A stretch of DNA of 63,518 bases from Macrostomum lignano (taxonomy: Eukaryota), in the NCBI GenBank assembly GCA_002269645.1, contig NIVC01002911.1, forward strand, positions 66,882 through 130,399, written 5' to 3'. Made by a program: the position numbers and the translations under genes. Positions 737 to 23,046 of this stretch are shown piece by piece. Each line of letters begins with the position of its first letter. The stretch's first letter is position 1. The notes beneath the pieces are model-generated. The model was not told the DNA's origin. It worked only from the letters and a program-made list of their open reading frames with translations, and made no database searches.

Positions 737-3700
737 GTGAGTTGTGGGACCACTGCTTGCGATTCTCTATTGTCCTTGTCACTCTCCCATCCTCCTGGCA
801 CTCTCCCATCCTCCTGGCACTCTCCCATCCTCCTGGCACTCTCCCATCCTCCTAGCACTCTCCCATCCTCCTGGCACTCTTCTATCATCCTTGGCAGTCT
901 TCTATCATTCTTGGCACTCTTCTATCATCTTTGACACTCTTCTATCATTGGCACTCTTCTATCATTGGCACTCTTCTATCATTCTTGGCACTCTTCTATC
1001 ATTGGCACTCTTCTATCATCCTTGGCACTCTTCTATCATCCTTGGCACTCTTTTAACATTCTTGGCACTCTTCTATCATCCTTGGCACTCTCTCATCATC
1101 CTTGGCACTCTCCCATCATCCTTGGCACCCTTCTATCATCCTTGGCACTCTCCCATCATCCTTGGCACTCTTCTATCATCCTTGGCACTCTCCCATCATC
1201 CTTGGCACTCTTCTATCATCCTTGGCACTCTTCTATCATCCTTGGCACCCTTCTATCATCCTTGGCACTCTCCCATCATCCTTGGCACTCTTCTATCATC
1301 CTTGGCACTCTCCCATCATCCTTGGCACTCTCCCATCATCCTTGGCACTCTTCTACCAGGCGCCCAAGACACCATCAACGACAAGGTGGTGCTGAAGCCG
1401 TGCACCGGCTTCGACCTGCGCCGGCTGAAATCCGTCACGGACCTGAACTCGGCGGCCTCGCACACGGAGAGCCTGACGGCCATCGAGGAGTGCGCGGCCG
1501 GCTGGATGAAAGCAGATCGAGCAGGTGCTGGCCGAGACCGAGCAGATCCGGCGCGAGGCCGACAATGTGGGGCCTCGGGCCGAGCTGGAGTACTGGAAGC
1601 GGCGGATGGCCAAGTTCAACTACCTGCTGGACCAGCTCAAGTCGCACGACGTCAAGCAGGTTCTGGGCGTGCTCAACGCCGCCAAATCGCGCTCTTTGAA
1701 GGTGAGCAGTCAAGTCTGAGTGTTGAAATTATGCACCAGATATGCATATTTATCTTTGCATGAATATTTCATCCTTCTTCCCTTCTCTCTCCTCTCCTCT
1801 CCTCTCCTCTCCTCTCCTCTCCTCTCTCTCCTCTCCTTCTCTCCTCTCCTCTCCTCTCCTCTCTCTCCTCTCCTCTCCTCCTCTCCTCTCCTCTCCTCTC
1901 TCTCCTCTCCTCTCCTCTCCTCTCCTCTCCTCTCCTCTCCTCTCCTCTCCTCTCCTCTCCTCTCCTCTCCTCTCCTCTCCTCTCCTCTCCTCTCCTCTCC
2001 TCTCCTCTCCTCTTATCTCCTCTCCTCTCCTCTCCTCTTATCTCCTCTCCTCTCCTCTTATCTCCTCTCCTCTCCTCTCTAATCTTCTTTTCTCTATTCT
2101 AACCTCCTTTTCTATCGCCAATCTATCGTCTTGTCGCCAACGTTGCCCCTTGTATCCACAAGTGCATATGCTGTGCAGTGTAATATTTATTTAATGCTTA
2201 ATTTATTAACTTGCACATAATTACAATTATGTATAGGGATTACCTTGCGTGTCTGCCACAAGGTCTCTGCTTTCGCATACAATTAAACGCTGGGGGTCTC
2301 CCCGACCGCCCGTTTCTATCATTTCACTTTTTATTTTCTTGTTTTCCTTACCTTCCTAAGATGAAGCGCCTCTGCTTTGCAGTTGCTATGGACGCCAAGC
2401 ACCCTGTTGTGCGGTCTGTCTCTCTGAGTCTCTGCGTCTCTCTCACCCTTTCGGTTGTTTTACTGTGCGTGTTTGGCTGAACCACGTCGAGTTTAGCGTG
2501 ACAGGGGGTCGGGTCGGGTACGGCAAGACACACACAGAAAATTTTTAATCAAGACTCACGCACTGCATTGTTAACCTGCTGTGCAAAGGCTAAAGGCATC
2601 TTGAATTAGAAGCGCTCTCCTAACCTGTGACGCCTCTCTCGCCATAGCAACCGCACACCTATCTTCACTGCTCCTCTTCTACCTAAGCCGGGCAGGCAGT
2701 AATTGTGCTAGTGCAGTGCTGCCTGCTTTCTCTATAAATTATTTTCGACTAAAATTTTCTGCCAAAGCTACTATTGGTAGAATATATCTTTTTAGTCGTA
2801 ATTGCAATATTGAGTATTAAATTATTTTTACATTTAAAATCGCGCCAAAACAAGCATTATTATTTTTTGTTAATATAAAGTACGTAAAATCCACGAGTGC
2901 ATTTGATTAACTTAAATGATTTGAATTACTAATGCCTGTTTAGAATTATGCAGAGAGTGATTTAAAACGATTTAAAATGAAGTAAACTATTTAGAACTAT
3001 GTAGAATGAGTCAGGACAAATTAAAATAATTTAGAATGATTCATGATTATTTAAAATTAATTAAAATTAATGAAAATTAATGAAAATTAATGAAAATTAA
3101 TGAAAATGAAATAAAATGAGCTGAAACAAATTAAAATTAATTATAATTGAATTAATTATAATTGATTAGATTAAAATTTCATCAGTCGAATTGTGTAAAC
3201 TCAGTAAAACTGCGGTGTACTCAAACGGTGAAAAACTGTTGATAAACGCGCATTTAAATAGTATTAATTCAAAATTTGAAATAATTACTTAGAAATAATA
3301 ATCATTACTAGCTAATTCCTATTTACAGTACAGTGCAACATGTATAGTAACTATTTCTCTATTTAAGTAAATATATTAAAATCAAATTCATAAAAATACG
3401 AGCATTTATTAACATTTTTATATTTGTTTATGTAGTTTTAGTTTGCATTGTCTTACTGATTACAGTCTAAGCAACATAAAATAAATAATTTTGTCAAATT
3501 TAAATCATCAAAACTTTCTAAAACTATTTGATTCTCAAACGCATAGCTCCTGCTTATTTTGCACCACCAGACTTGGTTCGAGATGGACCGCCGCATCACG
3601 GACAATGCCAATGAGGCCAAGGATAATGTGAAATTTTTGTACACCCTCGATGAGCACTGCATGCCGCTGTACCACAGCGACCCGGTGAAGATGGTGGACA

Positions 3701-6700
3701 TGATCCCCAAGCTGATCAACGGCATCAGGATGATCCACAGCATCTCGCGGTACTACAACACCTCCGAGCGGATGACTTCGCTGTTCGTGAAGGTCACCAA
3801 CCAGATGATCACCGCTTGCAAGAGCTACATCAGCCAGGCGCACACGGAGACCATCTGGTCCCAGCCGACGGACCAGGTGATCGCTAAACTCAAGGACTGC
3901 ATCCGGCTTAACGAAGAGTACCAGACCTGCTTCCAGCGGACCAAGGCCAAGCTCGAGCAGATGCCCAACGAGAAGAAGTTCGAGTTCTCCGAGATGTACA
4001 TCTTTGGCAAGTTTGACACGTTCTGTCGACGGCTGAAGAAGATCATCGAGATGTTCCAGACCATGGAGATGTTCTCGCACCTGGCCGAGTCCAAAATCGA
4101 AGGCATGGAGATGATGTCCGCCAAGTTCAACGTCATCGTGGTTGGCATGAAGAAAAAGCCGTACGACTTTTTGGATCAGCGCAGAGTTGATTTCGATAAT
4201 GACTATGAGGATTTCAAGCGGCAGATTCTGGAGTTGCAGGTGCGTTGCTAGGGTCTTTCTCTAGTCGAGTAGGGCAAGCTTTCCATGACCTAAACTAAAT
4301 GACCCATGCTGTCAATGACTCACATTTTCTATTGTCTCTGATTTAAACTGTCAGTATCCCAGGCTGTCTATGACCCAAGCTATCTAGATGCCTATGACTT
4401 ACTTGACTCAGCTGCAGGGTGGTCCGAAGACGCAGCGGAAAGGCGAGCGTCGCCCATTCCGCTAATCCCTGAGACTAGACTAGAGCTAGGGCCGCGGGGC
4501 CGGTCAGGGAGGTCTGCCGGACCTGTTTTCAGCGTGGTTTTTAGTGGGGAAGACAGAGGTCGTTTGGTAGCCCTCTAGATACCTATGACCCAAGCTGTCT
4601 ATGACCAAAGCTGTCGATGACCGAAACTGTCTATGACCCAAGCTATCTATGAACCGAACTGTATATAATCAAATTTTCTGTAAAAAAAACTCCATGACCC
4701 AAACCGTATCAGCTAAACTGATAATGACACTAATTATCTATGGCCCAAGCACTAATCGACCCTTGAATTCCCATTCCCGGCACGCTCCAGGGCAGCATCC
4801 AGGCCTTCATGGACGCCCGCTTTGAGAAGCTGACCAGCTCCTACGAGCGCTGCAGACTCTGAAGCGATTCGAACGGCTGCGAATTCCTCGCCTTGGTATC
4901 GAGGAGAAATACCAGAAGATACTGGTCTTCTACGGCAAGGAGCTGGACAGCGCAGTCCGCATCTACAACAAGAACAAGGACGATCCGCCAATCGCACGCG
5001 ACCTGCCGCCAATCGGCGGCAAAATCTGCTGGGCCCGCCAGCTGTTCCGCCGCATCGAGGAGCCCATGGTGCTCTTCAAGACCATGCCGCAGCTGCTGGC
5101 CAGCCCGGAGGGCAAGCGCATTGTGAAGAACTACAACAAGCTGGCCGAGGTGCTGGTGGCATTCGAGATGCTCTACCACCGCGCCTGGACCAAACAGGTG
5201 CAGTCGGCGCAGGTCGGCCTGAAGGCCTCGCTGCTGGTGCGCCACCCGGAGACCAAGCGGCTCTTCATCAACTTGGACGCTGAGATTCTCACTCTGATCA
5301 GGGAGACGGAGCTGATGGCGCGTCTGGGCATGGACATCCCGCTAGCGGCGCAGCATCTTCGGGCCCGCCAGGTGGCTATCAAACGCCACTACGAGAGCCT
5401 CGGCATGATGCTGGACGAGTACAACCGGATTCTAGACGGCGTGCCGCCCGAGTACGAGCCGCTGATGGGCCCGCGGCTTAACAGACTGCGCCGCGTGGTG
5501 GAGCCGGGACTGACCACGCTCAACTGGATGAGCCTCGGCACGGACAAGTACATCGAGGAGGTGTACGCTGACATGCGCGATGTGGAGCTGCTGCTCAGCC
5601 GCGCTAAGGATCTGCGCGAGTTCCGCATCGACCAGGTGCTGGACGAGATGGCCACCGTGCAGCTGTGCGAGCTGCCCGACACTGAGCCCTGGACCATAGA
5701 TGCCTTCCTGGAGCGGACGCAGAGCCTCTGCCACAAGGGCGCCCAGCTGCTCCAGGTTAAGAGCATCAACGTCGAGGAGGCCGTCAATGAGCTCATCAAC
5801 ATGCTCGTCGGCGAAGACGAACCTGAGCAGCCGGCGACTGTCGATGAGGCCGACAAGCCAACTGATGAGGCGCCAGCGGCCGAGCAGCCGGAGGGCGGCG
5901 AGCGGATCCTTCGCCGGCCGAAGAAGGACGAGAAGGCGCAGATCGAGGAAGCCGCAATGGAGCTGCTGAGCCACTTCAACCACAGGAACATGGACGCGAT
6001 TGTGAAGGTGACACGCAACACGCTGGAGGCGCTGCGCAAGCGGATCACCGCTTCGACTCTGGCTGCCTACGACAGGACTGCCACCGCCCAGAGGCCGTTC
6101 TTCCAGTGCTTCGCCATGCTGGCGATCCCGCAAGTGGTGGTGCAGCCGACCACGAGGACGTGCAGCAGTGTGTCAACAAGGCCTGCCAGAGCATCATCGG
6201 CGTCAGCAAGGGCGTCTCCCAGTGGTCCAAGGAGCGCAAGCTGACCAAAGCAAAGCCAGAGGAAGCCGACGACTTTTTCATCGAGACGACCGAGGGTGGC
6301 GGCGACCCGGCAACGGCCAGGTCGGACGCTCGCCGACCCAGCGTGGCAGCCAGCGTGGCGCCAACCGACATCTCCGGTCAGTCGGACGTGGCCGCTTCCC
6401 GGACTGGCCTGCGGAGCCACCGGCAGCGGCAGGACAGCGAGGACGGCGCTGCCTCGCAGCAGTACGCGGTGCAGATGCAGGCCAACAACTACTTCAAGAA
6501 CGTATCGGACAACAAAGAGGTCGCCAAGCTGGCCTCACTGCTGTCAACTGCCATCAACAGTCAAAAGAAGGAGATCGTGACGGCTCTGGAGCGCTTCTAC
6601 CGCTACAAGTACATCTGGGAGCTGAACCGGGAGGAGACTCTGCAGCAGTTCGTCAGCCAGTCGCCTCGATTAGGCGAATACGAGGCCAAAATTATCGAGT

Positions 6701-9700
6701 TCGAGCGCGAGGAGGAGCGAATCAGCGGCGAGTCGGCGTCCTACGACTGCGGCCCGGTGGCAATCTTCACCGAGCGGCTCAAGCTGGGCCTGCTCACCGA
6801 GAGCAAGGCCTGGCGGCTGCTGTACGGCCGCTCCTGCAACCAGAAGTACAAGACCGAGATGGAGGAATTCTTTGCTTTCATCGAAGATATCGAGAAGCGA
6901 CTCAGCCGGCCAATCAAAGATCTGGACGACATCCGCATCGCCATGGCCGCGCTCAAAGACATCCGGGAGAACGAGATCCGCATCGACATGGGCATTGGCC
7001 CCATCGAGGAGTCCTACGCCATGCTCAACAAGCACGAGCTCCCCGTGCCCACGGAGGAGGCCGAACGAGTTGACACCCTCCGTTACACCTGGGAGAAGCT
7101 GCGCGCCCACGGTATTGAAGTGCAGAACCACCTGGTCAGCATCCAATCAGACTTCCGGGACAATCTCGTGCAGGAAGTGGTGGTGTTCAAGAACGACTGC
7201 AACAAGTTCTACGAGGACTATGACACTGCGGGTCCCATGGTGCCCGGCGTGGCGCCGCGAGAGGCTTCGGACAGGCTGATCATCTTCCAGAACCAGTTCG
7301 ACAATCTCAACAGGAAGTTCGTCACGTACACGGGTGGCGAGGAGCTGTTCGGCCTGCCGGTCAGCGACTACCCGGAGCTCCATCGGATCAAGAAGGAGCT
7401 GAACTTGCTCACTAAGCTCTACAGTCTGTATAACGATGTGATCAACACGGTCAACGGCTATTACGACATTCTGTTCACTGAAGTTGACATCGAGAAGATC
7501 AGCACGGAGCTGCAAGAGTTCCAGAACCGATGCCGCAAGCTGCCCAAGGCGCTGAAAGACTGGCCAGCGTTCGCCGATCTCAACAAGACAATTGACGACT
7601 TCAATGAGATGGTGCCGCTGCTGGAGCTGATGACTAACAAAGCCATGAAGCCGCGTCACTGGCAGAGAATGTCCGACCTCACCAAGCACCACTTCGACGT
7701 TGAGAGTGACGGGTTCACTCTGCGGAACATCCTGGAGGCACCGCTGCTGCAGTATAAAGAGGAGATCGAGGACATCTGCATCAGCGCCGGCAAGGAGAAG
7801 GACATCGAGGCCAAACTAAAGGCCGTCATCGCCGAGTGGAGCAGCCACGAGTTTCGCTTTGGCACGTTCAAAAACCGTGGCGAGCTGCTCCTGCGCGGCG
7901 ACCACACCGGCGAGATAATCAGCTTCATGGAGGATTCGCTGATGGTGCTCAGCTCGCTGCTTAGCAACCGCTACAACGCACCGTTCAAGAAGCAAATCCA
8001 GCAGTGGGTGAGCAACCTGTCGAACAGCTCTGAGATCATCGAGCAGTGGATGACGGTTCAGAATCTGTGGGTGTACCTGGAGGCCGTGTTCGTCGGTGGC
8101 GACATCGCCAAGCAGCTGCCGAAGGAGGCAAAACGGTTCAGCAACATCGACAAGAGCTGGATCAAGATCATGACCCGGGCGCACGAGACCACCAACGTCA
8201 TCCAGTGCTGCGTCGGCGATGAGACCCTCTCCCAGCTCCTGCCGCACCTGCTGGAGCAGTTGGAGCTCTGCCAGAAGTCTCTCACCGGCTACCTGGAGAA
8301 GAAGCGCCTGCTGTTCCCGCGTTTTTTCTTCGTGTCCGATCCGGCCCTGCTGGAGATCCTCGGCCAGGCCTCGGACCCGCACACCATCCAGGCCCACCTG
8401 CTGTCCATCTTCGATAACATCAAGACGGTGAAGTTCCACGAGAAGCAGTACGAGACCATTCTGGCCTGCTACTCGAGCGAAGGCGAGCAGCTCGAGCTGG
8501 AGAAGCCGGTGAAGGCAGAGGGCAACGTGGAAGTCTGGCTGATGACGCTGATGCAGCAGAGCCAGCGCTCGCTGCACGGCGTGATCCGCACTGCCTACAT
8601 GGCCATCAGCGACCAGAACTTCCAAATCCTGGAGTTCCTGGACATGTTCCCGGCGCAGATCGGCCTGCTTGGCATTCAGCTGATCTGGACTCGTGACTCC
8701 ACGGACGCGCTGAAAAACGCCAAGAGCGACAAGAAGGTGATGGCTAGCACCAATCAGAGCTTCCTAGATCTGCTAAATCTGCTGATTAATCAGACCACGC
8801 GCGAGTTGACTAAAGTTGAGCGCACCAAGTTCGAGACGCTCATCACCATCCACGTGCACCAGCGCGACATATTCGAGGATCTGTGCAAGATGCACATCAA
8901 ATCACCGACAGACTTCGAGTGGCTGAAGCAGACAAGATTCTACTTCATCGAGGACACTGACAAATGCATGATCAGCATCACGGATGTTGACTTCGAATAC
9001 CAGAACGAGTTCCTTGGCTGCACCGAGCGTCTTGTAATCACCCCCCTGACTGACAGGTGCTACATCACCCTCGCCCAGGCTCTGGGAATGTCCATGGGCG
9101 GCGCCCCGGCCGGGCCCGCCGGTACAGGAAAGACGGAGACCGTCAAAGACATGGGCCGCTGCCTCGGCAAGTACGTCGTGGTGTTCAACTGCTCCGACCA
9201 GATGGACTTCCGCGGTCTGGGCAGAATCTACAAGGTAAGCTGGTCAACCCTGCTTAATGATCAGCCCTACGACGTAACTGTTGAAATGAACCTTGCCTCA
9301 GCCAATGAGAGAGCTCTCAAGACTGGGGGAACCGATTCAAACACGTTGTACAACCTGGGGGTTGTAGCGTAGTGGTTAGAGCGTCGGACTCACAACTTGA
9401 AGGTCCGGGGTTCGATTCCCGATCCCACTGGAACAATTTGTGTCCTTGAGCAAGATACTTAACTCTGAATTGGTTCAGTTCTCCCAGCTGTAAAATGGGT
9501 GCCAGCATTAGCTGGGGTAATTGAGGCTGTGTGTGGCGACCCCCCAGTCCTTGGACTGAACAGCCGTACGCAGCCTTCAGATGTATCGCGCAATAGCTGC
9601 GGCTGAGCTGTCGGTTGCATATCTGGCCCAACTAGGGCAGGTGTAATCAGTTATTGTTAACGATTATTTGTTTGAAGTTATCAAAAAGATCCGCATTCAA

Positions 9701-12700
9701 GCACTTATTTAGCTGTAGTAGGACAAGAGCCATGGCTAGAACGATGAAAACAGGGCCTGTTTCCCCAAGGTGTAGTTCACTCTGGGCTGCTAGTCGACTG
9801 TCGCCAGAACTAATCGGATTAACACCTGTCGTTCCTTCCAGGGCCTGGCCCAGTCCGGCAGCTGGGGCTGCTTCGACGAGTTCAACCGCATCGAGCTGCC
9901 TGTGCTGTCCGTGGCGGCTCAGCAGATCGCCATCGTGCTCTCCTGCAAGAAGGAGCGCAAGAAGCAGTTCATCTTCACTGACGGCGACCTGGTCGAGATG
10001 AACCCGGAGTTCGGCATCTTCCTCACGATGAACCCCGGCTACGCTGGACGTCAGGAGCTGCCGGAGAATCTGAAGATCAACTTCCGCACCGTGGCCATGA
10101 TGGTGCCCGACAGGCAGATCATCATCCGCGTCAAGCTGGCCTCGGTCGGCTTCCTCGACAACATCACCCTCGCCAGGAAGTTCTTCACTTTGTACAAGCT
10201 TTGCGAAGAGCAGCTCACCAAGCAGGTGAGCGGTTTTAGAGATTGTCTCCTGCTCAACTCCAGCTCCTGCTTCTGACACTTCTCCTGCTGCTGCTCCTGA
10301 CACTACTCCTGCTCCTGACACTTCTCCTGCTGCTGCTCCTGACCCTACTCCTGCTTCTGACACTTCTCCTGCTGCTGCTCCTGACCCTACTCCTGCTTCT
10401 GACACTTCTCCTGCTGCTGCTCCTGACCCTACTCCTGCTTCTGACACTTCTCCTGCTGCTGCTCCTGACACTACTCCTGCTCCTGACACTTCTCCTGCTG
10501 CTGCTCCTGACCCTACTCCTGCTTCTGACACTTCTCCTGCTGCTGCTCCTGACACTACTCCTGCTCCTGACACTTCTCCTGCTGCTGCTCCTGACCCTAC
10601 TCCTGCTTCTGCTCCTAACACTACTCCTGCTGCTGCTCCTGACCCTACTCCTGCTTCTGCTCCTAACACTACTCCTGCTCCTGACCCTACTCCTGCTGCT
10701 GCTCCTGACCCTACTCCTGCTTCTGCTCCTGACACTACTCCTGCTCCTAACACTACTCCTGCTGCTGCTCCTGACCCTACTCCTACTTCTGCTCCTAACA
10801 CTACTCCTGCTGCTGCTCCTGACCCTACTCCTACTTCTGCTCCTAACACTACTCCTGCTGCTGCTCCTGACCCTACTCCTGCTTCTGCTCCTAACACTAC
10901 TCCTGCTCCTGACACTTCTCCTGCTGCTGCTCCTAACACTACTCCTGCTTCTGACACTTCTCCTGCTGCTGCTCCTGACCCTACTCCTGCTTCTGCTCCT
11001 GACACTACTCCTGCTCCTGACCCTACTCCTGCTTCTGCTCCTGACACTACTCCTGCTCCTGACCCTACTCCTGCTTCTTCTCCTAACACTACTCCTGCTC
11101 CTGACACTTCTCCTGCTGCTGCTCCTGACCCTACTCCTGCTTCTGCTCCTGACACTACTCCTGCTCCTGACCCTACTCCTGCTTCTGCTCCTGACACTAC
11201 TCCTGCTCCTGACACTTCTCCTGCTTCTTCTCCTAACACTACTCCTGCTTCTGCTCCTAACACTACTCCTGCTTCTGCTCCTGACACTACTCCTGCTCCT
11301 GACACTACTCCTGCTTCTGCTCCTGACACTACTCCTGCTGCTGCTCCTGACCCTACTCCTGCTTCTTCTCCTAACACTACTCCTGCTGCTGCTCCTGACC
11401 CTACTCCTGCTTCTTCTCCTAACACTACTCCTGCTTCTGCTCCTAACACTACTCCTGCTTCTGCCCCTGACACTGCTCCTGCTGCTGCTCCTGACACTAC
11501 TCCTGCTTCTTCTCCTAACACTACTCCTGCTGCTGCTCCTGACCCTACTCCTGCTTCTTCTCCTAACACTACTCCTGCTTCTGCTCCTAACACTACTCCT
11601 GCTTCTGCCCCTGACACTACTCCTGCTCCTGACACTTCTCCTGCTCCTGACACTTCTCCTGCTGCTGCTCCTGACACTACTCCTGCTTCTGCTCCTGACA
11701 CTACTCCTGCTCCTGACACTACTCCTGCTTCTGCTCCTGACACTACTCCTGCTGCTGCTCCTGACACTACTCCTGCTTCTGCTCCTGACACTACTCCTGC
11801 TTCTGCTCCTGACACTACTCCTGCTTCTGCTCCTGACACTACTCCTGCTGCTGCTCCTGACACTACTCCTGCTTCTGCTCCTGACACTACTCCTGCTTCT
11901 GCTCCTGACACTACTCCTGCTTCTGCTCCTGACACTTCTCCTGCTACTGCTCCTGACACTACTCCTGCTTCTGCTCCTGACACTACTCCTGCTCCTGACA
12001 CTTCTCCTGCTGCTGCTCCTGACACTACTCCTGCTCCTGACACTTCTCCTGCTGCTGCTCCTGACACTACTCCTGCTTCTGCTCCTGACACTACTCCTGC
12101 TGCTGCTCCTGACACTACTCCTGCTTCTGCTCCTGACACTACTCCTGCTCCTGACACTTCTCCTGCTGCTGCTCCTGACACTACTCCTGCTCCTGACCCT
12201 ACTCCTGCTGCTGCTCCTGACACTTCTCCTGCTGCTGCTCCTGACACTACTCCTGCTTCTGCTCCTGACCCTACTCCTGCTCCTGACACTTCTCCTGCTG
12301 CTGCTCCTGACACTACTCCTGCTCCTGACACTTCTCCTGCTGCTGCTCCTGACACTACTCCTGCTTCTGCTCCTGACACTACTCCTGCTCCTGACACTAC
12401 TCCTGCTTCTGCTCCTGACACTACTCCTGCTCCTGACACTTCTCCTGCTGCTGCTCCTGACACTACTCCTGCTCCTGACCCTACTCCTGCTGCTGCTCCT
12501 GACACTTCTCCTGCTGCTGCTCCTGACACTACTCCTGATCCAGCTCCTAAAACTACTCCTGCTGTTGCTCCTGACACTTCTGCTGCTGCTCCTGACACTA
12601 CTCCTGCTTCTGCTCCTGACACTACTCCTGATCCAGCTCCTAAAACTACTCCTGCTGCTGCTCCTGACACTTCTCCTGCTGCTGCTCCTGACACTTCTCC

Positions 12701-15700
12701 TGCTGCTGCTCCTGACACTACTCCTGATCCAGCTCCTAAAACTACTCCTGCTTCTGCTCTTGACACCAATACTGCTCATGACCCTACTCCTGCTGCTGCT
12801 CTTGACCCTACTCCTGATCCTGCTCCTGACCCTACTCCTGCTTCTGCTCCTGACACTACTCCTGCTCCTGACACTACTCCTGCTTCTGCTCCTGACACTA
12901 CTCCTGCTCCTGACACTTCTCCTGCTGCTGCTCCTGACACTACTCCTGCTCCTGACCCTACTCCTGCTGCTGCTCCTGACACTTCTCCTGCTGCTGCTCC
13001 TGACACTACTCCTGATCCAGCTCCTAAAACTACTCCTGCTGTTGCTCCTGACACTTCTGCTGCTGCTCCTGACACTACTCCTGCTTCTGCTCCTGACACT
13101 ACTCCTGATCCAGCTCCTAAAACTACTCCTGCTGCTGCTCCTGACACTTCTCCTGCTGCTGCTCCTGACACTTCTCCTGCTGCTGCTCCTGACACTACTC
13201 CTGATCCAGCTCCTAAAACTACTCCTGCTTCTGCTCTTGACACCAATACTGCTCATGACCCTACTCCTGCTGCTGCTCTTGACCCTACTCCTGATCCTGC
13301 TCCTGACCCTACTCCTGATGCTGCTCCTATCGCTATTCCAATCCTATATACTAAAAATCTGTCGGTATGCGATAGATTTCAGAAAAAATGGCTCAACCGA
13401 TTTTCTTCAAACTTGCACCATTTGATCAGAAATTTCTACTAATTTCAGGTGCACTACGACTTCGGCCTGCGCAACATTTTGTCCGTGCTGCGCACCCTGG
13501 GCACTGTGAAACGCTCCAACCCGAACGACAGCGAGCAGACGACAGTTATGCGAGTGCTGCGCGACATGAACTTGTCCAAGCTGGTGGACCAAGACGAGCC
13601 GCTGTTCCTGTCGCTTATTAATGATCTTTTCCCAGGTACGAGCGTATAAGCGGATTGAAACAACGTAGACAATATTCTTTGCAGAATAAAGTAAAGATCA
13701 AGATGAACTTTGAAACCCGCAGGCATCACGCTGGACAAGGCGGGCTACCCGCAGCTAGAGGCCGCCATCGCCAAGCAGGTGCAGGAGGCGGAGCTCATCA
13801 ACTGGGACTCCTGGAACCTGAAGCTCATTCAGCTTTTTGAGACGCAGCGCGTGCGTCACGGTATGATGACGCTGGGCCCCTCCGGAGCCGGCAAGACCCG
13901 CTGCATCCACACACTGATGAAGGCCTTGACGGACTGCGGCGAGCCGCACCGCGAGCTCCGCATGAACCCGAAGGCCATCACGGCGCCGCAGATGTTCGGC
14001 CGGCTCGACGTGGCCACCAACGACTGGACTGACGGCATCTTCTCCACGCTGTGGCGCCGCACCCTCAAGGCCAAGAAGGGCGAGCACATCTGGCTGGTGC
14101 TGGACGGCCCCGTGGACGCCATCTGGATCGAGAACCTCAACTCCGTGCTGGACGACAACAAGACGCTGACTCTGGCTAACGGCGATCGAATCCCCATGGC
14201 GCCGAACTGCAAGATCATCTTCGAGGTGCACAACATCGACAATGCGTCGCCTGCCACAGTGTCCCGCAACGGCATGGTGTACATGTCCAGCTCTGGGCTC
14301 AACTGGAACCCCCTGCTCAGCGGCTGGCTGCTCAAGAGGCCAACATTTGAGCGCGACCAGCTGTTCCCGCTGTTCGAGAGCACCTTCCCGGAGATCCTTC
14401 GCTATGCTATTCAATTCCTCACCTTCAAGATTGACGTCCTCGAGGCGTTCATCGTGCGACAATGCTGCGACCTGCTCGAAGGCCTGATCCCGAAGCGCGA
14501 GGAGAAGGAGGGCGCGCTTAGGCCCGAGTTCTACCGCAGGCTGTACGTGTTCACCATCATGTGGTCGGTGGGCGCGCTGCTGGAGTGGGAGGACCGCAAC
14601 AAGCTCGAGACGCAGATGCGGGAGCTGAAGCTGGACCTGCCCGAGTATGCAGCCGACTCCGACAACACCATGTTCGACTTCCTCGTTGGAGAGTCCGGCG
14701 AGTGGCAGCACTGGGACGAGAAGGTGGAGGAGTTCCTCTACCCGACCGACAGCACCCCCGAGTACGGCTCCATCCTTGTGCCCAATGTGGACAACGTGCG
14801 CACCGAGTTCCTCATCCACACCATTCACAAGCAGGAGAAGCAGGTGCTGCTGATCGGTGAGCAGGGCACGGCCAAGACCGTCATGATCAACAAATTCCTG
14901 GCCAAGTTCAACCCGGAGGAGCACATGAACAAGGCGCTCAACTTCTCCAGCGCCACCACGCCGATGATGTTCCAGCGGACCATTGAGAGCTACGTGGACA
15001 AGCGCATGGGCTCGACCTTCGGCCCGCCGGCCGGCCGCAAGATGACCGTCTTCATCGACGACATCAACATGCCGGTTATCAACGAGTGGGGCGACCAGAT
15101 CGCCAACGAGATCGTCCGCCAGCTGATGGAGAACTCTGGCTTCTACAACCTGGAGAAGCCGGGAGACTTCACCACCATCGTGGACATGCAGTTCATGGCC
15201 GCCATGATCCACCCCGGCGGCGGCCGGAACGACATCCCGCAGCGGCTGAAGCGCCAGTTCAACATCTTCAACTGCACGCTGCCGTCCAACCCGAGCATCG
15301 ACAAGATCTTCAGCGTCATCGGCTGCGGTCACTACTGCGAGGAGCGCGGCTTCCCCGAGGAGGTGCGCGCTATGGTGGCCAAGCTGGTGCCGCTGACCAG
15401 GCGCCTGTGGCAGCTCACCAAGATGAAGATGCTGCCGACCCCGGCCAAATTCCACTACGTGTTTAACCTGCGGGATCTCAGCCGGATCTGGCAAGGCATG
15501 ATCAACACCGTCAGCGAGGTGGTCAAGGACTCCAGCGTGCTGCTCAGCCTGTGGAAGCACGAGTGCTGCCGAGTCATCTCCGACAGGTGAGCGCGCGGTG
15601 AACATTGAAATGAATGCTTGCTGTTAGTAGGATTATCTTAAAGTCAAATAGAGCCATCTAGCTACTGCTAGTAGGATTATCTTAAAGTCAAATAGAGCCA

Positions 15701-18700
15701 TCTAGCTACTGCTAGTAGGATTATCTTAAAGTCAAATAGAGTCATCTAGCTACTGTTAGTAGGATTATCTTAAAGTCAAATAGAGCCATCTAGCTACTGC
15801 TAGTAGGATTATCTTAAAGTCAAATAGAGCCATCTAGCTACTGCTAGTAGGATTATCTTAAAGTCAAATAGAGTCATCTAGCTACTGTTAGTAGGATTAT
15901 CTTAAAGTCAAATAGAGCCATCTAGCTACTGTTAGTAGGATTATCTTAAAGTCAAATAGAGCCATCTAGCTACTGTTAGTAGGATTATCCTAAAGTCAAA
16001 TAGAGCCATCTAGCTACTGTTAGTAGGATTATCCTAAAGTCAAATAGAGCCATCTAGCTACTGTTAGTAGGATGATTTCAAAGTAAAAAATAAAGCCATC
16101 TAGCTACTGTTAGTAGGATGATTTTAGAGTCAAATCGAGTCATCTAGCTACTGTTAGTAGTATTGTAAAAAGTAACAAAGGTGCAGCATTTTCATATTTT
16201 TCATATTTCAGCTGATTGAATACTTCTTACACTGTGATTTGAGTAAGACTACGAGTTCATCTGTACCCTCTTCCTTGGCATTTTCTGTTTTTTAAGTTTC
16301 TTTTTAAGTTTCATTTCTAAGTTTTTCGTAACCGCTAGTTATTTATTTCGATGTCCAAATCTGCAACCCAACTCGCTGATTTTCTTTGCTATTCAAATTG
16401 AAATTCGACTGTCACTCTCAGATTCACCACTTATGACGACGTGAACTGGTTCGTGAAGACCATGAGCCGCGTGCTCGTGGAGGACATGGGCGATGATGCT
16501 GGGAAACTGCTGGAGCCAACGCACTACTTTGTGGACTTTCTCAGGTGGTCCTGGTGTCTTAGAATCCCGGAAAAATGATTTGTGGCTAACAGATTTAAAA
16601 CACCAATTTATTGTTTGCACCCTTGACACATTTTCCTTTACCTTTATTAATCAACTGACTTGCAGTGATTCTATTTCAGCTAAACCCCTCTTAACTATGC
16701 ACAATTTTTGCACCTTTGATTTTTCTAAACACTTTCGATGCACTGAATAACCTGCAATAATTCTAGCGGCCTACGCTGGAATGGTTGCTAGGGGAAGGTA
16801 GGAATTCGGAGAATAGAGAAGCTACCAGTCGCTCCTCTGCCACCCATCCGAGCCAGATTCGTGACGTTTGCCGACATCGGCTGGTTCGACAAGAGCATGA
16901 AGCGGCTCGTCCAGGAGGACCTCGGCGACCTGTTTGACCCCGTCATTGATAGGATGGAGTTTTTTGTCAACTTTCTCAGGTGCAAATCATTTAGGGGGGG
17001 GGGGCATACCGGATATGCCTCTACCGCGAGTCCATGATAGTTCGCTGGTAGCTCAAAATAGTTTTATCTAAAGTCGATTATTAATCTTATCCTATGATTA
17101 TACCAGCACTTTAACCCGGCTAATTAACACACAGTTATTACTCTCTAACAACATAATATTTAGCCAGTTTTAACTAAAGTAACTTACAGTTCTGCATGCT
17201 TCAAAGTCTTGTGAAGTCTTGAGAGACGCAACCTCGTTTCTAGGAAGGAAAAAAATGCTATAAAATTTTAACTCTGAACAAATTTCGCCCATTTCCAGAG
17301 ACGCTCCCGAGGCCACGGGAGACGAGCCGGACGATGCCAGCTTCGAGATGCCGCACATCTACGAACCGGTGAGCGGGACAGCTTCGGCTGTCTGGGTTCA
17401 AGGGTTTGCGAGTCTTGAGTGGTTTCTTAGTGAAAACACCTTTTTATGAAGATAGATATGGTAGGTAGCTTAAATAGGTAGCTTGGACAGGTAGTTTGGA
17501 CAGGTAGCTTGGACAGGTAGTTTTGACAGGTAGCTTGGACAGGTAGCTTGGACAGGTAGCTTGGACAGGTAGCTTGGACAGTTAGCTTGGACAGGTAGCT
17601 TGGACAGGTAGCTTGGACAGGTAGCTTGGACAGGTAGCTTGGACAGGTAGCTTGGACAGGTAGCTTGGACAGGTAGCTTGGACAGGTAGCTTGGATAGGT
17701 AGCTTGGACAGGTAGCTTGGACTGGTAGCTTGGACAGGTAGCTTGGACAGGTAGCTTGGACAGGTAGCTTGGACAGGTAGCTTGGACAGGTAGCTTGGAC
17801 AGGTAGCTTGGAGTAGTTCTGAGCTCACCTACAAATTGATCCCGTCTGACTCACCACTCCGCCCACAGATCCCAACTTTCGAGGCCCTGAGCGACCGCCT
17901 GCGCTACTTCATGGGCCAGTACAACGAGAGCATCCGCGGCGCCGGCATGGACCTGGTGTTCTTCCAGGACGCCATGACGCACCTGGTGAAGATCTCCCGC
18001 ATCATCAGTACGCCGCGCGGCAACGCCCTCCTAGTGGGAGTCGGCGGCTCCGGCAAGCAGTCGCTAACGCGCCTGGCCTCCTTCATCGCCGGCTACAAGA
18101 CTTTCCAGATCACCCTCACCCGGTCGTACAATGTGTCCAACCTGATGGAGGACCTGAAGTTCCTCTACCGAACCGCCGGCCAGCAGGGCAAGGGCATCAC
18201 CTTCTTGTTCACGGACAACGAGATCAAGGATGAGAGCTTCCTGGAGTACCTCAACAACGTCCTGGCCTCCGGCGTAGTGTCCAACCTGTTCCCCAGGGAC
18301 GAGATGGACGAGATCTGCCAAGAGCTGATCGGTGTCATGAAGAAGGAGTTTCCCAGACGGCCACCAACTAACGAGAACCTGCAAGAGTACTTCCTGACCC
18401 GCACGCGCCAGAACCTGCACGTGGTCTTGTGCTTCTCTCCGGTTGGCGAGAAATTCCGTAGTCGGGCGCTGAAGTTCCCGGCGCTGATCTCCGGCTGCAC
18501 AATGGACTGGTTCCAGCGCTGGCCGCGCGACGCCCTGGTCGCCGTGGCTGATCACTTCCTGTCCAAGTTCGAGATTGTCTGCTCCGAGACTGTCAAGCAC
18601 GAACTTATCCAGACCATGGGCGTTGTGCACGACGGCGTCGCCGAGAGCTGCGTGGACTACTTCAACAGGTACCGGCGCAGCACGCACGTGACGCCGAAGT

Positions 18701-21700
18701 CCTACCTGAGCTTCCTGCAGGGCTATAAGAAGATCTACACGGACAAGCTGCAGCATTACCAGGGCCTGGCAGCCCGCATGGACAGCGGTCTTGAGAAGCT
18801 GCTCGAGGCACAGGATTCCGTTAAGGTCCTCAGCGAGGAGCTGGTTGTGAAGGAGAAGGAGCTTGCCATCGCCAACAGAGAAGCCGAGGAGGTGCTCAAA
18901 CAGGTGGCTATTCAGCAGCAGGCCGCCCAGGAGGTGAAAAACAAGGTGCAGGTGGTGAAGGATCGAGCTCAGGCCATCGTGGACTCGATCGCGCAGGACA
19001 AGGCCATCGCCGAAGGCAAGCTGGAGGCCGCCCGCCCGGCCCTGGAGGCGGCCGAGGAGGCGCTGAACACCATCAAGCCGGCCGATATTGCGACGGTACG
19101 GAAGCTGGGCAAACCGCCGCACCTCATCATGCGCATCATGGACTGCGTGCTGATGCTGTTCCAGCGCCACCTGGACACGGTCACCCAGGACCCGGAGCGG
19201 CCCTGCGCCAAGCCCAGCTGGTCCGAGTCGCTCAAGCTCATGTCCAACACCGGCTTCCTCAACATGCTGGTCACCTTCTCGAAAGACTCAATGACTGAGG
19301 AGAGCATTGAGTTCCTCATGCCCTACCTGGAGATGGAAGACTACAACTTCGAGACGGCGAAGCGCGTCTGCGGCAACGTTGCCGGTTTGCTGTCGTGGAC
19401 CAAAGCCATGCAGGACTTCTTCTGGATCAACAAGGAGGTCATGCCGCTGAAGGACAATCTGGCCAAGCAGGAGGTCCGCCTGCACAAGGCCAACGAAGAT
19501 TTGGCCGCGGCGCAGCAGACGCTAGACGAGAAAGAGGCCGAGCTGGCCAAGGCGCGCGCCATCTACGATGAGGCGATGCGCAAGAAGCAGGCGCTGGAGG
19601 ACGATGCGGCCGCCTGCCGGCGGAAGATGAACGCCGCCGAGCAGCTGATCACCGGCCTGGCCGACGAGAAGGAGCGCTGGACCCGGCAGAGCAAGGAGTA
19701 CAAGGCTCAGATCGGCAGGCTGGTTGGCGACGTCCTGATGGCCACCGCCTTCCTGTCCTACTCTGGACCGTTCAACCAGGACTTCCGCCTCCTGCTGAAC
19801 CGGAACTGGCAGAAGAACCTGAAAGAGCGCAAGATTCCGTCTAGCGATACGCTCAACCTCATCGAGATGCTGGTAGAGGCGACCACCATTGCAGAGTGGA
19901 ACCTGCAGGGGCTGCCCAACGATGAGCTGAGCACAGAGAACGGCATCATTGTGACTCAGGCAAGCCGCTTTCCGCTGCTCATCGACCCGCAGGGCCAGGG
20001 CAAGATCTGGCTGAAGAACCGCGAGACGGCTAACGAGCTGCAGATCACGTCGCTGAATCACAAATACTTCCGGCAGCACCTGGAGGACGCCCTGTCGCTT
20101 GGCCGGCCGCTGCTGATTGAGGACATCAACGAAGAGCTGGACCCCGCGCTAGACAATGTCCTGGAGAAGAACTTCATTAAGCAGGGCTCTACGCTCAAGG
20201 TGAAAGTTGGCGACAAGGAGGTCGACGTACTAAAGGGTTTTTCGTTGTTCGTCACCACGAAGCTGCCGAATCCGTCCTACACGCCTGAGATCTTCGCGCG
20301 CACCAGCATCATTGACTTCACCGTGACCATGAAGGGTCTGGAGGACCAGCTGCTGGGCCGCGTGATCAAGACCGAGAAGGCCGAGCTCGAGGAGCAGCGC
20401 GTGCAGCTCATGGAGGATGTTACCAACAACAACAAGATCATGAAGAACCTGGAGGACACGCTGCTGTACCGCCTGACCAGCACCCAGGGATCCCTGGTGG
20501 ACGACGAAGAGCTCATCGGTGTGCTAAAAGAAACCAAAGTGACCTCGACTGACGTGCGCCAGAAGATCGAGATCGCCAAGGAGACGCAGATCAAGATCGC
20601 CTCCGCCCGCGAGGAGTACCGCCCGGTGGCCTCCCGCGGCTCCATCCTGTACTTCCTTATCACCGAAATGTCCATGGTGAACGTGATGTATCAGACCTCG
20701 CTCAGGCAGTTCCTTGGTCTGTTTGACCTGTCCATGGACCGATCGACCAAGTCCCCAATCACGGCCAAGCGCATCACCAACATCATCGACTACATGACCT
20801 ACGAGGTGTGGAAGTACGCTGCCCGCGGCCTCTACGAGGAGGACAAGCTGACGTTCACTCTGCTGCTGGCGCTCAAGATCGACATGCACTCCAAGAAGGT
20901 GAAGCACGAAGAGTTTCAGACGCTCATCAAGGGCGGCGCTTCGCTCGACCTGAACGTAGTGCAGCCCAAGCCGCACAAGTGGATCCTGGACTCCACCTGG
21001 CTCAACCTGGTCGAGCTGTCCAACCTTCATCAGTTCTCCGGCATCCTTGATCAGATCACGCGCGGCGAGAAGGCCTGGAAACAGTGGTTCGATAAGGAGG
21101 CGCCCGAGGAGGAGATCATTCCAGACGGCTACAGCACCAATCTGGACGCGTTCCGGCGCCTGCTGCTGATCCGGTCCTGGTGCCCCGACCGCACGCTTTC
21201 GCAGGCCAAGAAGTACATCGCGGACAGTCTGGGCGACAAGTTCGCCGAGGGCGTCATCCTGGACATCGAGGCGGTATGGGAGGAGTCGGAGCCGCGCACG
21301 CCCATGGTCGGCCTGCTGTCGATGGGCTCGGATCCCACGCCGAGCATCGAGCTGCTCGCCAAGAAGCACAAGAAGGAGTGCAAGGCGATTTCCATGGGCC
21401 AGGGTCAGGAGGTCCACGCCAGACGCCTGGTGGCGACCTCTCTGCAGAACGGCGGCTGGGTGCTGCTGCAGAATTGTCACCTGTCTCTGGACTACATGCT
21501 GGAGGTGATGGACCAGCTGATCGAGGCGGAGACCGTGAACGAAGATTTCAGCCTGTGGGTGACCTGCGAGGTTCACCCGAAGTTCCCCATCTCCTTCCTG
21601 CAGCAGTCCATCAAGTTCACCAACGAGCCGCCGCAGGGAGTGAAAGCCGGCCTCAAGCGGACATACACGAGCTTCACGCAGGACTTCCTGGACATCAGCA

Positions 21701-23046
21701 ACATGCCGCAGTGGCGCCCGATGCTCTACTGCGTGGCCTTCCTGCACACGGTGGTCCAGGAGCGCAGGAAGTTCGGCCCCATCGGCTGGAACATCCCCTA
21801 CGAGTTCAACACGGCCGACCTGAACGCAAGCATCCAGTTCGTGCAGAACCACCTGGACGACATGGACATCAAGAAGGGCGTCAACTGGAACACCGTTCGC
21901 TACATGCTCGGCGAGATCCAGTACGGCGGCCGGGTCACCGACGATTTCGACAAGTTCCTGTTGAACACCTTCTGCAAAGTGTGGTTCTCGGACCGCATGT
22001 TCGAGCCGACATTCGAGTTCTTCAAGGGCTACAGCATCCCGAAGTTCCCCAAGCTCACTGAGTACCTGGAGTACATCCAGAGCCTGCCCGCTTACGACAC
22101 GCCGCAGGTGTTCGGCCTGCACGCAAATGCCGACATCAGCTATCAAGGCCGCACCACCAAGGCCATCCTGGACTGCATCCTCAGCATCCAACCGAAGGAC
22201 TCCGGCGGCGGCTCCGGCGAGACGCGCGAGTCAGTGGTGTACAAGCAGGCCGAGGACCTGCTGGAGAAGCTGCCAAACGACTACGTGCCGTTCGAGGTGC
22301 GTGAACGCCTGCAGAAGATGGGCCCGCTGCAGCCGATGAACATCTTCCTCAGGCAGGAGGTGGACCGCATGCAGCGGGTCATCACCGCGGTGCGCACCAC
22401 CCTCACGGACTTGAAGCTCGCCATTGAGGGCACCATCATCATGAATGAGAACCTGCGCGACGCTCTCGATTCAATGTATGACGCCAAGATACCGCAGGTG
22501 TGGCGCAAGATCTCCTGGGACTCCTCGGCTCTGGGCTTCTGGTTCACCGAGCTGATCAACCGCAACCAGCAGTTCAGCACCTGGGTGTTCGGCGGCCGGC
22601 CCAACTGCTTCTGGATGACCGGCTTCTTCAACCCGCAGGGCTTCCTCACCGCGATGCGTCAGGAGGTGACCCGCGCTCACAAAGGCTGGGCTCTCGACGG
22701 CGTCCTGCTGCACAATGACGTCACCAAAATGCTTCTAGCCGACGTGCACAGCCCGCCAACTGAGGGCGTCTACGTCCACGGCCTGTTTCTCGAGGGCGCC
22801 GGCTGGGACCGGAGGAACAACCGCCTGACGGAGGCCCGGCCGAAGATCCTGAACGAGCCGCTGCCCGTGGTGCACATCTACGCCATCAACTCGGTGAGCA
22901 AGGACGAGAAGCTGTACATGTGCCCGATCTACAAGAAGCCGCGCCGCACCGACCTCACCTATGTGGCCACGATCAAGCTGCGGACCAACCAGCCCCCAGA
23001 TCACTGGGTCATGCGCGGCGTCGCACTGCTCTGCGACGTCATGTGA
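392..23046 (+). CDS. DNAH5: Axonemal dynein heavy chain, outer-arm DNAH5/DNAH8 (gamma-type) family; spliced gene, 5'-partial (join 392-736,1360-1701,3571-4239,4791-9234,9842-10225,13449-13635,13723-15586,[16422-16544 or 16857-16979],17299-17368,17869-23046)
   Basis: Four P-loops in order: [32 protein letters not shown]. Also [28 protein letters not shown], a coiled-coil stalk and a C-terminus ending [10 protein letters not shown]. Tail motifs [10 protein letters not shown] and [19 protein letters not shown] are typical of DNAH5/8. All junctions are GT-AG with matching phases. About 4,530 codons after correcting 3 single-base indels. Confidence 0.95.
775..1357. repeat. 20-bp intronic minisatellite CTTGGCACTCTYCYATCATC
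   Basis: Direct reading; source of ORFs 744..1763, 965..1699 and 1102..1395. Confidence 0.95.
1360..1701 (+). CDS. DNAH5: Dynein HC exon ([10 protein letters not shown]...AAKSRSLK); +1 frameshift at 1509-1511
   Basis: Acceptor TTCTACCAG at 1359, donor GTGAGC at 1702. Removing one A from AAA at 1509-1511 gives [32 protein letters not shown]. Confidence 0.9.
1783..2080. repeat. (CTCCT)n microsatellite
   Basis: Direct reading. Confidence 0.95.
2638..2651. promoter_or_regulatory. Candidate RFX X-box (CTCGCCATAGCAAC) in a dynein intron
   Basis: 13/14 match to RTHNYYWTRRNRAC; TGACG half-CRE about 10 nt upstream; a second weaker X-box GTTGCTATGGACGC at 2382-2395. Confidence 0.4.
3050..3160. repeat. 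AT-rich decamer repeat (AAAATTAATG)n, degenerate
   Basis: About 5 clear units in an AT-rich intron segment. Confidence 0.75.
3571..4239 (+). CDS. DNAH5: Dynein HC exon ([11 protein letters not shown]...RQILELQ)
   Basis: Acceptor CACCAG at 3570, donor GTGCGT at 4240, phase 0/0, 223 codons in ORF 3559..4251. Confidence 0.93.
4280..4760. repeat. Degenerate ~16-bp repeat (CTATGACCCAAGCTGT) interrupted by the 175-bp insertion
   Basis: Recurrent TATGACC..AAGCT units on both sides of 4399-4573. Confidence 0.7.
4399..4573 (-). mobile_element. 175-bp 5'-truncated retroposon (SINE/LINE 3' end) with probable target-site duplication
   Basis: GC-rich insert flanked by TCTAGAT(G/A)CCTATGAC at 4383-4398 and 4574-4589; ends in AAGTAAGT on the minus strand; internal hairpins. 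Confidence 0.5.
4791..9234 (+). CDS. DNAH5: Dynein HC 4.4-kb exon (tail, linker, first half of AAA1); -1 frameshifts near 4847 and 6151
   Basis: Acceptor CTCCAG at 4790, donor GTAAGC at 9235. Joins ORFs 5066..6244 and 6106..9372 and contains [18 protein letters not shown]. Confidence 0.92.
9357..9650 (+). mobile_element. tRNA-derived SINE with CORE-like central domain (3' end approximate)
   Basis: A box TAGCGTAGTGG and B box GGTTCGATTCC in 9357-9428. Then TGTGTCCTTGAGCAAGATACTTAAC...TCAGTT...CTGTAAAATGGG (9439-9499), which resembles the MIR/CORE consensus as recalled. Confidence 0.7.
9842..10225 (+). CDS. DNAH5: Dynein HC exon (AAA1: [16 protein letters not shown]...CEEQLTKQ)
   Basis: Acceptor CCTTCCAG at 9841, donor GTGAGC at 10226, 128 codons; Walker B CFDEFNR and [11 protein letters not shown]. 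Confidence 0.95.
10252..13330. repeat. 3-kb intronic triplet-based minisatellite (CCTGCTCCTGACACTACT and variants) with a 477-bp higher-order duplication at its 3' end
   Basis: Units are built from CCT/GCT/ACT/GAC/TCT. The minus-strand ORFs starting at 12769 and 13246 begin with the same long peptide. Confidence 0.95.
13449..13635 (+). CDS. DNAH5: Dynein HC exon ([13 protein letters not shown]...INDLFP)
   Basis: Acceptor TTTCAG at 13448, donor GTACGA at 13636; HYDFGLR motif. Confidence 0.95.
13723..15586 (+). CDS. DNAH5: Dynein HC exon (AAA2 and AAA3)
   Basis: Acceptor CCGCAG at 13722 after an 87-nt intron, donor GTGAGC at 15587 (phase 2); GPSGAGKT and GEQGTAKT P-loops. Confidence 0.95.
15618..16160. 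repeat. 44-bp intronic minisatellite CTAGCTACTGYTAGTAGGATTATCTTAAAGTCAAATAGAGCCAT
   Basis: Period 44, about 12 units. Confidence 0.95.
16422..16544 (+). CDS. DNAH5: Dynein HC alternative exon A ([40 protein letters not shown])
   Basis: Acceptor CTCTCAG at 16421, donor GT at 16545; 123 nt, phase 2/2; continues VISDR into the ...FVDFLR motif. Confidence 0.88.
16857..16979 (+). CDS. DNAH5: Dynein HC alternative exon B ([40 protein letters not shown])
   Basis: Acceptor GAGCCAG at 16856, donor GTGCAA at 16980; 123 nt, phase 2/2, no stops; 16/40 aa identical to exon A without gaps. Confidence 0.85.
17299..17368 (+). CDS. DNAH5: Dynein HC 70-nt exon ([23 protein letters not shown])
   Basis: Acceptor TTTCCAG at 17298, donor GTGAGC at 17369; phase 2/0; matches the recalled FLRDAPE...IYEP motif of DNAH5/8. 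Confidence 0.9.
17455..17812. repeat. 13-bp intronic minisatellite GGACAGGTAGCTT
   Basis: Direct reading. Confidence 0.95.
17869..23046 (+). CDS. DNAH5: Dynein HC terminal 5.2-kb exon (AAA4, stalk/MTBD, AAA5, AAA6, C-terminal domain)
   Basis: Acceptor CCACAG at 17868; uninterrupted frame to TGA at 23044-23046 (ORF 17836..23046); [36 protein letters not shown]. Confidence 0.96.

Follow-up and report, generated by a model that had tools for sequence, protein, structure and literature searches.

In a 63,518-nt stretch of the Macrostomum lignano genome (assembly GCA_002269645.1, contig NIVC01002911.1, positions 66,882 to 130,399 of the forward strand; referred to as the window, with position 1 at its first letter), the gene of a DNAH5-type outer-arm dynein heavy chain contains two adjacent internal exons, exon A (16422..16544) and exon B (16857..16979), that code for two different versions of one segment of the motor domain. 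Both exons appear to be members of a conserved cluster and to be used alternatively, most probably in a mutually exclusive manner, a reading to which we assign a probability of roughly 0.6. According to this reading, the mature mRNA would take one of the two exons, with the result of two motors whose AAA3 small domains differ in about 24 residues.

Exons A and B are located on the plus strand between two constitutive exons: the upstream one (13723..15586; AAA2-AAA3 and most of the AAA3 lid; phase 2 end; strong donor GTGAGC) terminates in ..HECCRVISD|R with two codon bases pending, and the downstream one (17299..17368; 70 nt; acidic AAA3-AAA4 linker; donor GTGAGC) completes the Arg codon at 17299 (R|DAPEATGDE..). 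Both exons are exactly 123 nt in length, are entered and left in phase 2, and are preceded by AG and followed by GT (donors GTGGTC for A, the more canonical copy, and GTGCAA for B, the more divergent one). The encoded peptides are aligned without gaps and are identical in 16 of 40 positions, differing in 24; at the DNA level, 74 of the 123 positions are identical (approximately 60%), with matches at 25, 25 and 21 of 40 first, second and third codon positions, respectively. In tblastn searches of the window, either peptide recovered the other exon at E = 2.6e-10 and no third copy. The surrounding introns are intron 1 (15587..16421; 835 nt, GC content 0.35; with a 44-nt x 12.3 tandem array at 15621-16164), intron 2 between A and B (16545..16856; 312 nt, GC 0.42) and intron 3 (16980..17298; 319 nt, GC 0.38). 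As 123 nt correspond to 41 codons (3 x 41), joint inclusion and joint skipping of the two exons both stay in frame. These basic features of the pair, i.e. coordinates, length, phase, borders, intron size, ungapped 16/40 identity and in-frame double inclusion, had been listed in the initial annotation of this DNA and were all confirmed on the sequence; a small correction outside the exon-pair claim concerns the exon after the 70-nt exon, which starts at 17869.

By sequence comparison, the gene is an outer-arm dynein heavy chain of the DNAH5/DNAH8 type (Chlamydomonas gamma / Tetrahymena alpha type), in agreement with its earlier assignment to the outer arm. A 262-residue query containing either A or B was aligned end to end and without gaps with residues 2771-3034 of human DNAH5 (8j07_n0), at E-values around 1e-125 (5.5e-125 for the A isoform, 2.5e-125 for the B isoform); a DNAH8-like chain came next, ahead of Chlamydomonas gamma and Tetrahymena alpha, with other dynein classes far lower (bit scores, for the 262-residue region only: 419-421 for DNAH5 8j07_n0, 374-387 for the DNAH8-like chain 9fqr_I3, 196-204 for Chlamydomonas gamma, and at most 191 for all other classes). 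The Pfam domains follow each other on one strand in the order DHC_N1, AAA_lid_1, DYN_lid, AAA_8, AAA_lid_11 and Dynein_C; the AAA_6, AAA_5 and AAA_7 domains were deduced from homologues.

Irrespective of the exon chosen, the segment corresponds to DNAH5 residues 2834-2876 and is placed by Pfam at the end of AAA_lid_1 (the AAA3 lid), ahead of AAA_8 (AAA4). AlphaFold2 models of both isoforms revealed the same secondary structure (a long helix at construct residues 127-145 followed by a second, short one, plus a loop and, at FV, a bridge of two residues), with pLDDT values across the segment of 86-94 for A and 84-96 for B; the fold is kept in the model of the B isoform. Each exon encodes one and the same module, which consists of the final long helix of the AAA3 lid, followed by a short second helix or loop and by the FVDF strand leading into the acidic AAA3-AAA4 linker. 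Replacement of A by B in the query lowered the score by 6 to 14 bits against gamma/DNAH8-type chains and raised it by 4 to 9 bits against many other axonemal classes (DNAH9, DNAH1, DNAH2, DNAH6, Chlamydomonas beta); B would accordingly seem slightly more of a "generic dynein" version and A the more type-specific one.

Several properties within the window indicate that both exons are coding. When compared with a family profile built from 129 homologous segments, A and B scored 60.4 and 49.2 bits, respectively, over the full length and without gaps, the best of 400 shuffles reaching 10.5 bits. Both retain the near-invariant F, D, W, F and F-V-x-F-L-R positions; the nearly invariant D of the FVDF motif is replaced by N in B. 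The GC content at third codon positions (GC3) is 0.775 in A and 0.825 in B (0.886 in the terminal exon), while the three surrounding introns have a GC content of 0.35-0.42. A codon log-likelihood trained on large exons versus non-coding trinucleotides amounted to +23.0 for A in frame versus -28/-51 in the other frames, and to +18.6 for B in frame versus -48/-59; both in-frame scores are among the top ~1% of stop-free 40-codon non-coding windows and lie within the range of held-out coding sequence (15.5-42.5). The duplication that gave rise to A and B must be old, because their synonymous sites are near saturation (pS 0.53, dS ~0.9), and A and B resemble each other no more closely than either resembles distant orthologues; an abandoned exon of such an age should have drifted from its exon-like GC3 to intron composition. 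The functionality of both exons is therefore considered highly probable. The earlier proposals of an old duplication and of selection acting on both copies are thus borne out, the latter by profile, GC3 and codon scores as well as by tandem pairs in relatives that evolve at pN/pS ratios of 0.07-0.38.

These relatives were found by fetching the genomic contigs around homologues and by scanning metagenome contigs with the upstream exon; altogether, the segment profile was run over 90 loci in all six reading frames. While the initial annotation had treated the pair as a feature of one gene, the same arrangement proved to be conserved in several lineages: 11 further distinct loci of environmental or genomic origin carry the exon in two or, in one case, three tandem copies, with position and phase unchanged. 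Five belong to Group R (L007, L008/L009, L010, L014, L017/L019/L022), which represents bdelloid rotifers as indicated by a Rotaria magnacalcarata protein 91-96% identical to these loci, three to Group F (L027/L029/L031, L034, L039), and three are placed outside both groups (L028, L042 and the three-copy locus L035). Including the window, 23 of 25 cluster exons are exactly 123 nt long and the other two 126 nt; all possess AG/GT borders and phase 2/2, and the spacer introns between the copies range from 85 to 1141 nt. In Group R, pN/pS is 0.07-0.33 for copy 1 and 0.07-0.15 for copy 2, in Group F 0.31-0.33 and 0.29-0.38, respectively; as these low ratios are accompanied by a high between-taxon pS within each group (0.54-0.94), both copies are functional coding exons in Groups R and F.

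In a tree of the 123 residues just upstream of the cluster, the window groups with L028, L032/L035 and Group F, and within this clade two or three copies are present in every member whose contig covers the interval. This clade membership, the best evidence available, suggests that the pair of the window is part of a conserved cluster and not an isolated chance event. A single ancient duplication is nevertheless not claimed, because the identities between copies of different lineages are all in the range of 13-24 of 42, because a neighbor-joining tree of the exons unites A with copy 1 of the Group F loci (L027/L034/L039) but does not place B, and because the more canonical copy is the first one in the window and Group F and the second one in the rotifers.

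The copy number is not constant among relatives. In the rotifer locus L013 (1203-1311), copy 1 carries a 13-nt frameshifting deletion with the rest of the gene intact (a sequencing error is possible); in the rotifer locus L015 (1669-1754), copy 1 is absent and an 85-nt intron takes its place; and a rotifer ohnologue type (L006) likewise has no copy 1. The presence of copy 1 thus varies among close bdelloid-like relatives, and an mRNA containing copy 2 only must be functional in these cases. L006 (one copy) and L007 (two copies) are collinear paralogous dynein loci from the same ENA sample (ERZ26165376) and look like a bdelloid ohnologue pair, since each is also followed by an HSP20 gene. The two copies of L007 occupy positions 4309-4431 and 4547-4669 of that locus. 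At the other extreme, the metagenome contig of L035 (JAAUYA010402262.1), a member of the clade of the window, contains three tandem copies at 1853-1975, 2293-2418 and 3370-3498 (123, 123, 126 nt) and ends shortly past the third; the cluster may therefore be larger. A separate duplication event in the same gene part was observed in L004 (ERZ27293330): the next exon (RDAPEA.GDE..) shows a recent partial tandem duplication of ~140 nt including the acceptor (1391-1462 and 1531-1602), the upstream duplicate being without an obvious donor. No A/B-type segment was detected within 10 kb in L001; L002 and L003 were uninformative, as their contigs end too early, and the contigs of the closest relatives found (L091 and L092, 85-90% identical in AAA4) begin inside the intron upstream of the 70-nt exon, which is likewise a separate exon there. 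An intron after V[IF]xDR is common to many taxa.

An unlikely alternative, to which these losses lend some weight, is that the old tandem duplication has left one exon, B more likely than A, as a relic without use and that only the other is spliced in. Relics do exist in relatives (the frameshifted copy 1 of L013, the lost copy 1 of L015), an uninterrupted frame of 41 codons is in itself no rarity, and B has the lower profile score (49 versus 60 bits), the exchange of a nearly invariant residue and a long orphan branch in the exon tree. In contrast, B has a GC3 of 0.825 between introns of GC 0.38-0.42, has kept its in-frame codon score, its AG/GT borders, the exact length of 123 nt and the other core residues, i.e. 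features that a neutral copy with synonymous sites near saturation should have lost; moreover, at least two copies are kept at pN/pS ~0.3 by every covered member of the nearest clade.

The interpretation of A and B as alternatively used exons is in line with the splice sites of the cluster. None of the 25 cluster-exon donors has a G at position +5, as opposed to nine of 12 donors of the constitutive upstream exons (Fisher's exact p = 1.8e-6, a value that overstates the significance because the lineages are related and were counted as independent). Within the window, the five constitutive donors placed (GTGAGC three times, GTGCGT and GTACGA) all possess the +5G that is missing from the donors of A and B. 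In the rotifers, the weak donors are themselves conserved (GT[CG]TTT after copy 1, GTA[TG][CT]A after copy 2). A regulated inclusion would fit the weakness of the 5' splice site in all cluster members, and given these sites the inclusion of A and B would probably be regulator-dependent and not the default.

That a chain of this type accommodates a single such segment, located where the AAA3 lid ends and ahead of AAA4, had been stated at the outset and is supported by the Pfam placement and by the homologues read: in each of the 133 homologous protein or open reading frame (ORF) sequences with a fully delimited segment, one segment of 38-43 residues is present (exactly 41 in 105 of them), and the same holds for the ~280 homologous proteins or ORF fragments read in total, none of which has two, as well as for three contiguous cDNA-like contigs with one segment each. 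A query with both exons, searched against 1.84 billion proteins, yielded no two-segment protein among the 47 read from the top 150 representatives; matches that were aligned with this query in one stretch turned out to be divergent dyneins with loop insertions instead of double segments, and a search with the A/B alignment alone gave no candidates. In the protein collections, the best match to the protein of the window was 74% identical, and no same-species or congeneric sequence was found; among the retrieved homologous proteins, there was no isoform pair with near-identical flanks and differing segments, and a search for spliced sequences from any duplicate-bearing lineage found none.

Against this background, the constitutive inclusion of both exons, which would create a tandem repeat of 41 residues in the AAA3 lid, is regarded as quite improbable. 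It would preserve the frame, the 312-nt intron has nothing unusual, no obstacle to splicing from A to B was detected, and the purifying selection on both copies in relatives is also compatible with it. However, two segments occur in none of the homologous sequences counted above (0/~280, and 0/47 of the top-150 representatives read), in residues and exact length both copies match a single slot, which in a compact lid could be filled by one of them only, all donors of the cluster are weak, and the frameshifted copy 1 of L013 and the sister lineages devoid of copy 1 point to a functional mRNA with copy 2 only. An assembly artefact, i.e. two diverged alleles or paralogues wrongly joined in tandem, might be suspected in a window so extremely rich in tandem repeats, which are troublesome for assemblers, but is hardly credible for copies that are 60% identical in DNA and have unique non-repetitive flanks and splice sites of their own, the more so as the same architecture was assembled independently at 11 other loci in unrelated projects. 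Alternative use of A and B, as judged from these sequence comparisons, thus appears probable.

With respect to the enforcement of an exclusive choice, two known mechanisms could be ruled out. Incompatibility of U2- and U12-type splice sites does not apply, as U12 motifs are absent: neither an RTATCCT donor nor a TCCTTRAY branch site is present in 15587-17868 (intron 2 included), and all borders are GT-AG with U2-like donors. A frame shift followed by nonsense-mediated decay (NMD) does not apply either, since both outcomes, joint inclusion and joint skipping, are in frame. The initial annotation had regarded the intron between A and B as too long for steric exclusion and had proposed a search for docking/selector pairings in the flanking introns. 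The first point holds insofar as a length of 312 nt by itself permits splicing; however, the relevant distance is that between the 5' splice site and the branch point, and the only CTRAY motifs of intron 2 (16586-16590 and 16655-16659) are situated 42 and 111 nt past the donor of A, with none within 80 nt of the acceptor of B. A distal branch point could thus make A-to-B splicing sterically difficult in the window. As a general explanation, steric exclusion is doubtful because the rotifer introns are short (middle intron 85-133 nt, other introns at the locus 50-100 nt). The proposed pairing search gave no usable pairing, neither in inverted-repeat nor in duplex screens; the alignment of the rotifer introns showed just short conserved motifs beside the splice sites, and the introns of the loci are too diverged for covariation. 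A distal branch point or trans-acting factors are candidates for what might prevent joint inclusion.

One further element was observed in this region: the 12-nt sequence AAGCTACCAGTC at 16819-16830, located 26-37 nt upstream of the acceptor of B, is complementary to the 13-nt repeat unit at 17499-17796 in the intron after the 70-nt exon (one perfect site and 22 sites at 11/12 among the 25 pairs listed; rough chance probability ~5%). Its role in a pairing is doubtful, because looping out B together with the 70-nt exon would shift the frame.

Several points weigh against the interpretation as mutually exclusive exons. First of all, exclusivity is deduced and not observed. NMD, as outlined above, cannot police joint inclusion or skipping; the inverted-repeat scan between the relevant introns of the window detected short matches only, and an RNAduplex energy screen of the three introns of the duplicate-bearing loci (with the exception of an eighth locus and of one L034 pair) gave z-scores of -1.8 to +2.1, none of them significant. 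The relatedness of the lineages tempers the donor statistics. As regards exon B, its own conservation is deduced from the clade membership and not from an alignment of orthologues, the species of the window having no close relative in the data; its N at the FVDF position where D is nearly invariant, as well as the long orphan branch in the neighbor-joining tree, add to this. Finally, the ratio between A and B (pN/pS 0.71, dN/dS ~0.57 after correction) is weak evidence for 40 codons at saturation.

Mutually exclusive exons in a dynein heavy chain are not without precedent. In the gene of the Schistosoma mansoni cytoplasmic dynein heavy chain SmDHC1, such an exon served as a test case (Pillmann et al. 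2011, PMC3228551): as for A and B, adjacent homologous exons of equal length with split codons at both ends encode part of the dynein motor region, and they were judged mutually exclusive because the family-wide alignment has one such segment (PMC3228551). The operational features used by Pillmann et al. 2011 (neighboring position, equal length, matching phase and splice sites, homology, a single slot in the family) are all found in A and B. In contrast, SmDHC1 is a cytoplasmic DHC1, whereas the present gene is of the axonemal outer-arm DNAH5 type; the positions are not comparable, as the SmDHC1 exon is placed just at "the middle of the gene" (PMC3228551). Furthermore, alternative splice forms in the motor domain have been noted for some dynein heavy-chain genes (Kollmar 2016, PMC5100056). 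The kind of arrangement is therefore already known; what is new is a case in an outer-arm axonemal chain that spans lineages and is under selection. For axonemal outer-arm heavy chains, the literature searched, which had most subscription journals outside its scope, yielded neither a description of such a cluster nor one of its conservation across lineages.

Clusters of mutually exclusive exons also occur in the muscle myosin heavy chain of arthropods (mentioned in PMC3228551). There, as in A and B, interchangeable exons replace a defined structural element of the motor domain, but the motor superfamily is a different one, the dynein gene has a single cluster of two to three exons, and the myosin isoforms are documented by transcripts and functional assays, A and B by sequence comparison. 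The myosin exons are conserved across lineages, swap a defined element of the motor domain and are thought to tune mechanochemistry by cell type. In alpha-tropomyosin, the choice between exons 2 and 3 is made by steric exclusion via a distal branch point; like A and B, these exons form a two-exon cluster whose separating intron is not short, and the CTRAY motifs near the donor of A would match such an arrangement, although sequence does not reveal which branch points are used. In the insect genes Dscam and 14-3-3zeta, the choice reportedly depends on the pairing of docking-site and selector RNA elements (Graveley 2005, as cited in PMC5740500). Such a pairing would explain an exclusive choice despite in-frame joint inclusion and spliceable introns; in contrast to these genes, no convincing inter-intronic pairing was found at A/B.

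As to the remainder of the window, the part of the dynein gene located within it extends over 3547..23046 (+ strand) from the DHC_N1 region to the stop codon in few, large exons, as placed by Pfam and the ORF map; its N-terminal start lies upstream of 3547 or outside the window. Pfam DHC_N1 is found at 3547-4248 (+) and Dynein_C at 22000-23040 (+), the latter within the continuous terminal exon (17869..23046, +) that codes for AAA4, stalk, AAA5, AAA6 and the C-terminal domain and ends at the stop codon. The exons of the window are GC-rich (~0.60) and its unique intron sequence is AT-rich; nearly all introns and intergenic stretches are occupied by clean tandem arrays of considerable length (Tandem Repeats Finder: 55 rows, with units of 4-272 nt and lengths up to 3 kb, e.g. 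10257-13328, 15621-16164, 17463-17812 and 55367-57835), the dynein intron at ~10230-13442 consisting almost wholly of a 24/42-nt array. A second gene on the plus strand contains immunoglobulin-type domain exons at 55116-55349 and 59013-59324 (Pfam I-set/Ig_3, E = 1e-6 to 4e-5), with 2.5 kb of a 20-nt tandem array lying between them.

The small domains of AAA+ rings are each packed against the large domain that follows, and the AAA3 site in cytoplasmic dynein gates the communication between ATP hydrolysis and microtubule binding; outer-arm dynein, in turn, sets the beat frequency and force of cilia. The swapped element, the last helix of the AAA3 lid, adjoins the AAA3 site. In the outer arms of Tetrahymena, the AAA3 small domains of the beta and gamma chains, i.e. 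of other heavy chains, form part of the grooves in which the linker of the neighboring head is docked (PMC8500839). Alternative helices could tune the AAA3-AAA4 coupling or the head-to-head coordination, and by analogy with the alternative exons of the myosin heavy chain, the functional effect may consist in a tuning of AAA3 gating or of the contacts of the AAA3 small domain. The assignment of the isoforms to different axonemes (epidermal cilia, protonephridia, sperm), as raised in the initial annotation, would be a mere guess. A and B would represent a natural minimal sequence pair for probing the role of the AAA3-lid helix and, given the in-frame joint inclusion and the unremarkable introns, a compact system for studying two-exon choice; for annotation, the consequence is that gene predictions are prone either to combining the two exons or to losing one.

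In a wider and more tentative sense, the AAA3-lid exon might be an old, repeatedly retained module that occurs in two to three interchangeable copies in bdelloid rotifers, in the clade of the window and in at least two further invertebrate lineages, with the choice made neither by U2/U12 incompatibility nor by frame-shift decay, and that provides motors specific for a cell type or state. Animals with one gene of this type have been assumed to power all their motile cilia and sperm with one motor; if the present reading is true, they would instead tune their axonemal motor at the level of isoforms, in a manner comparable to the alternative exons of muscle myosin.

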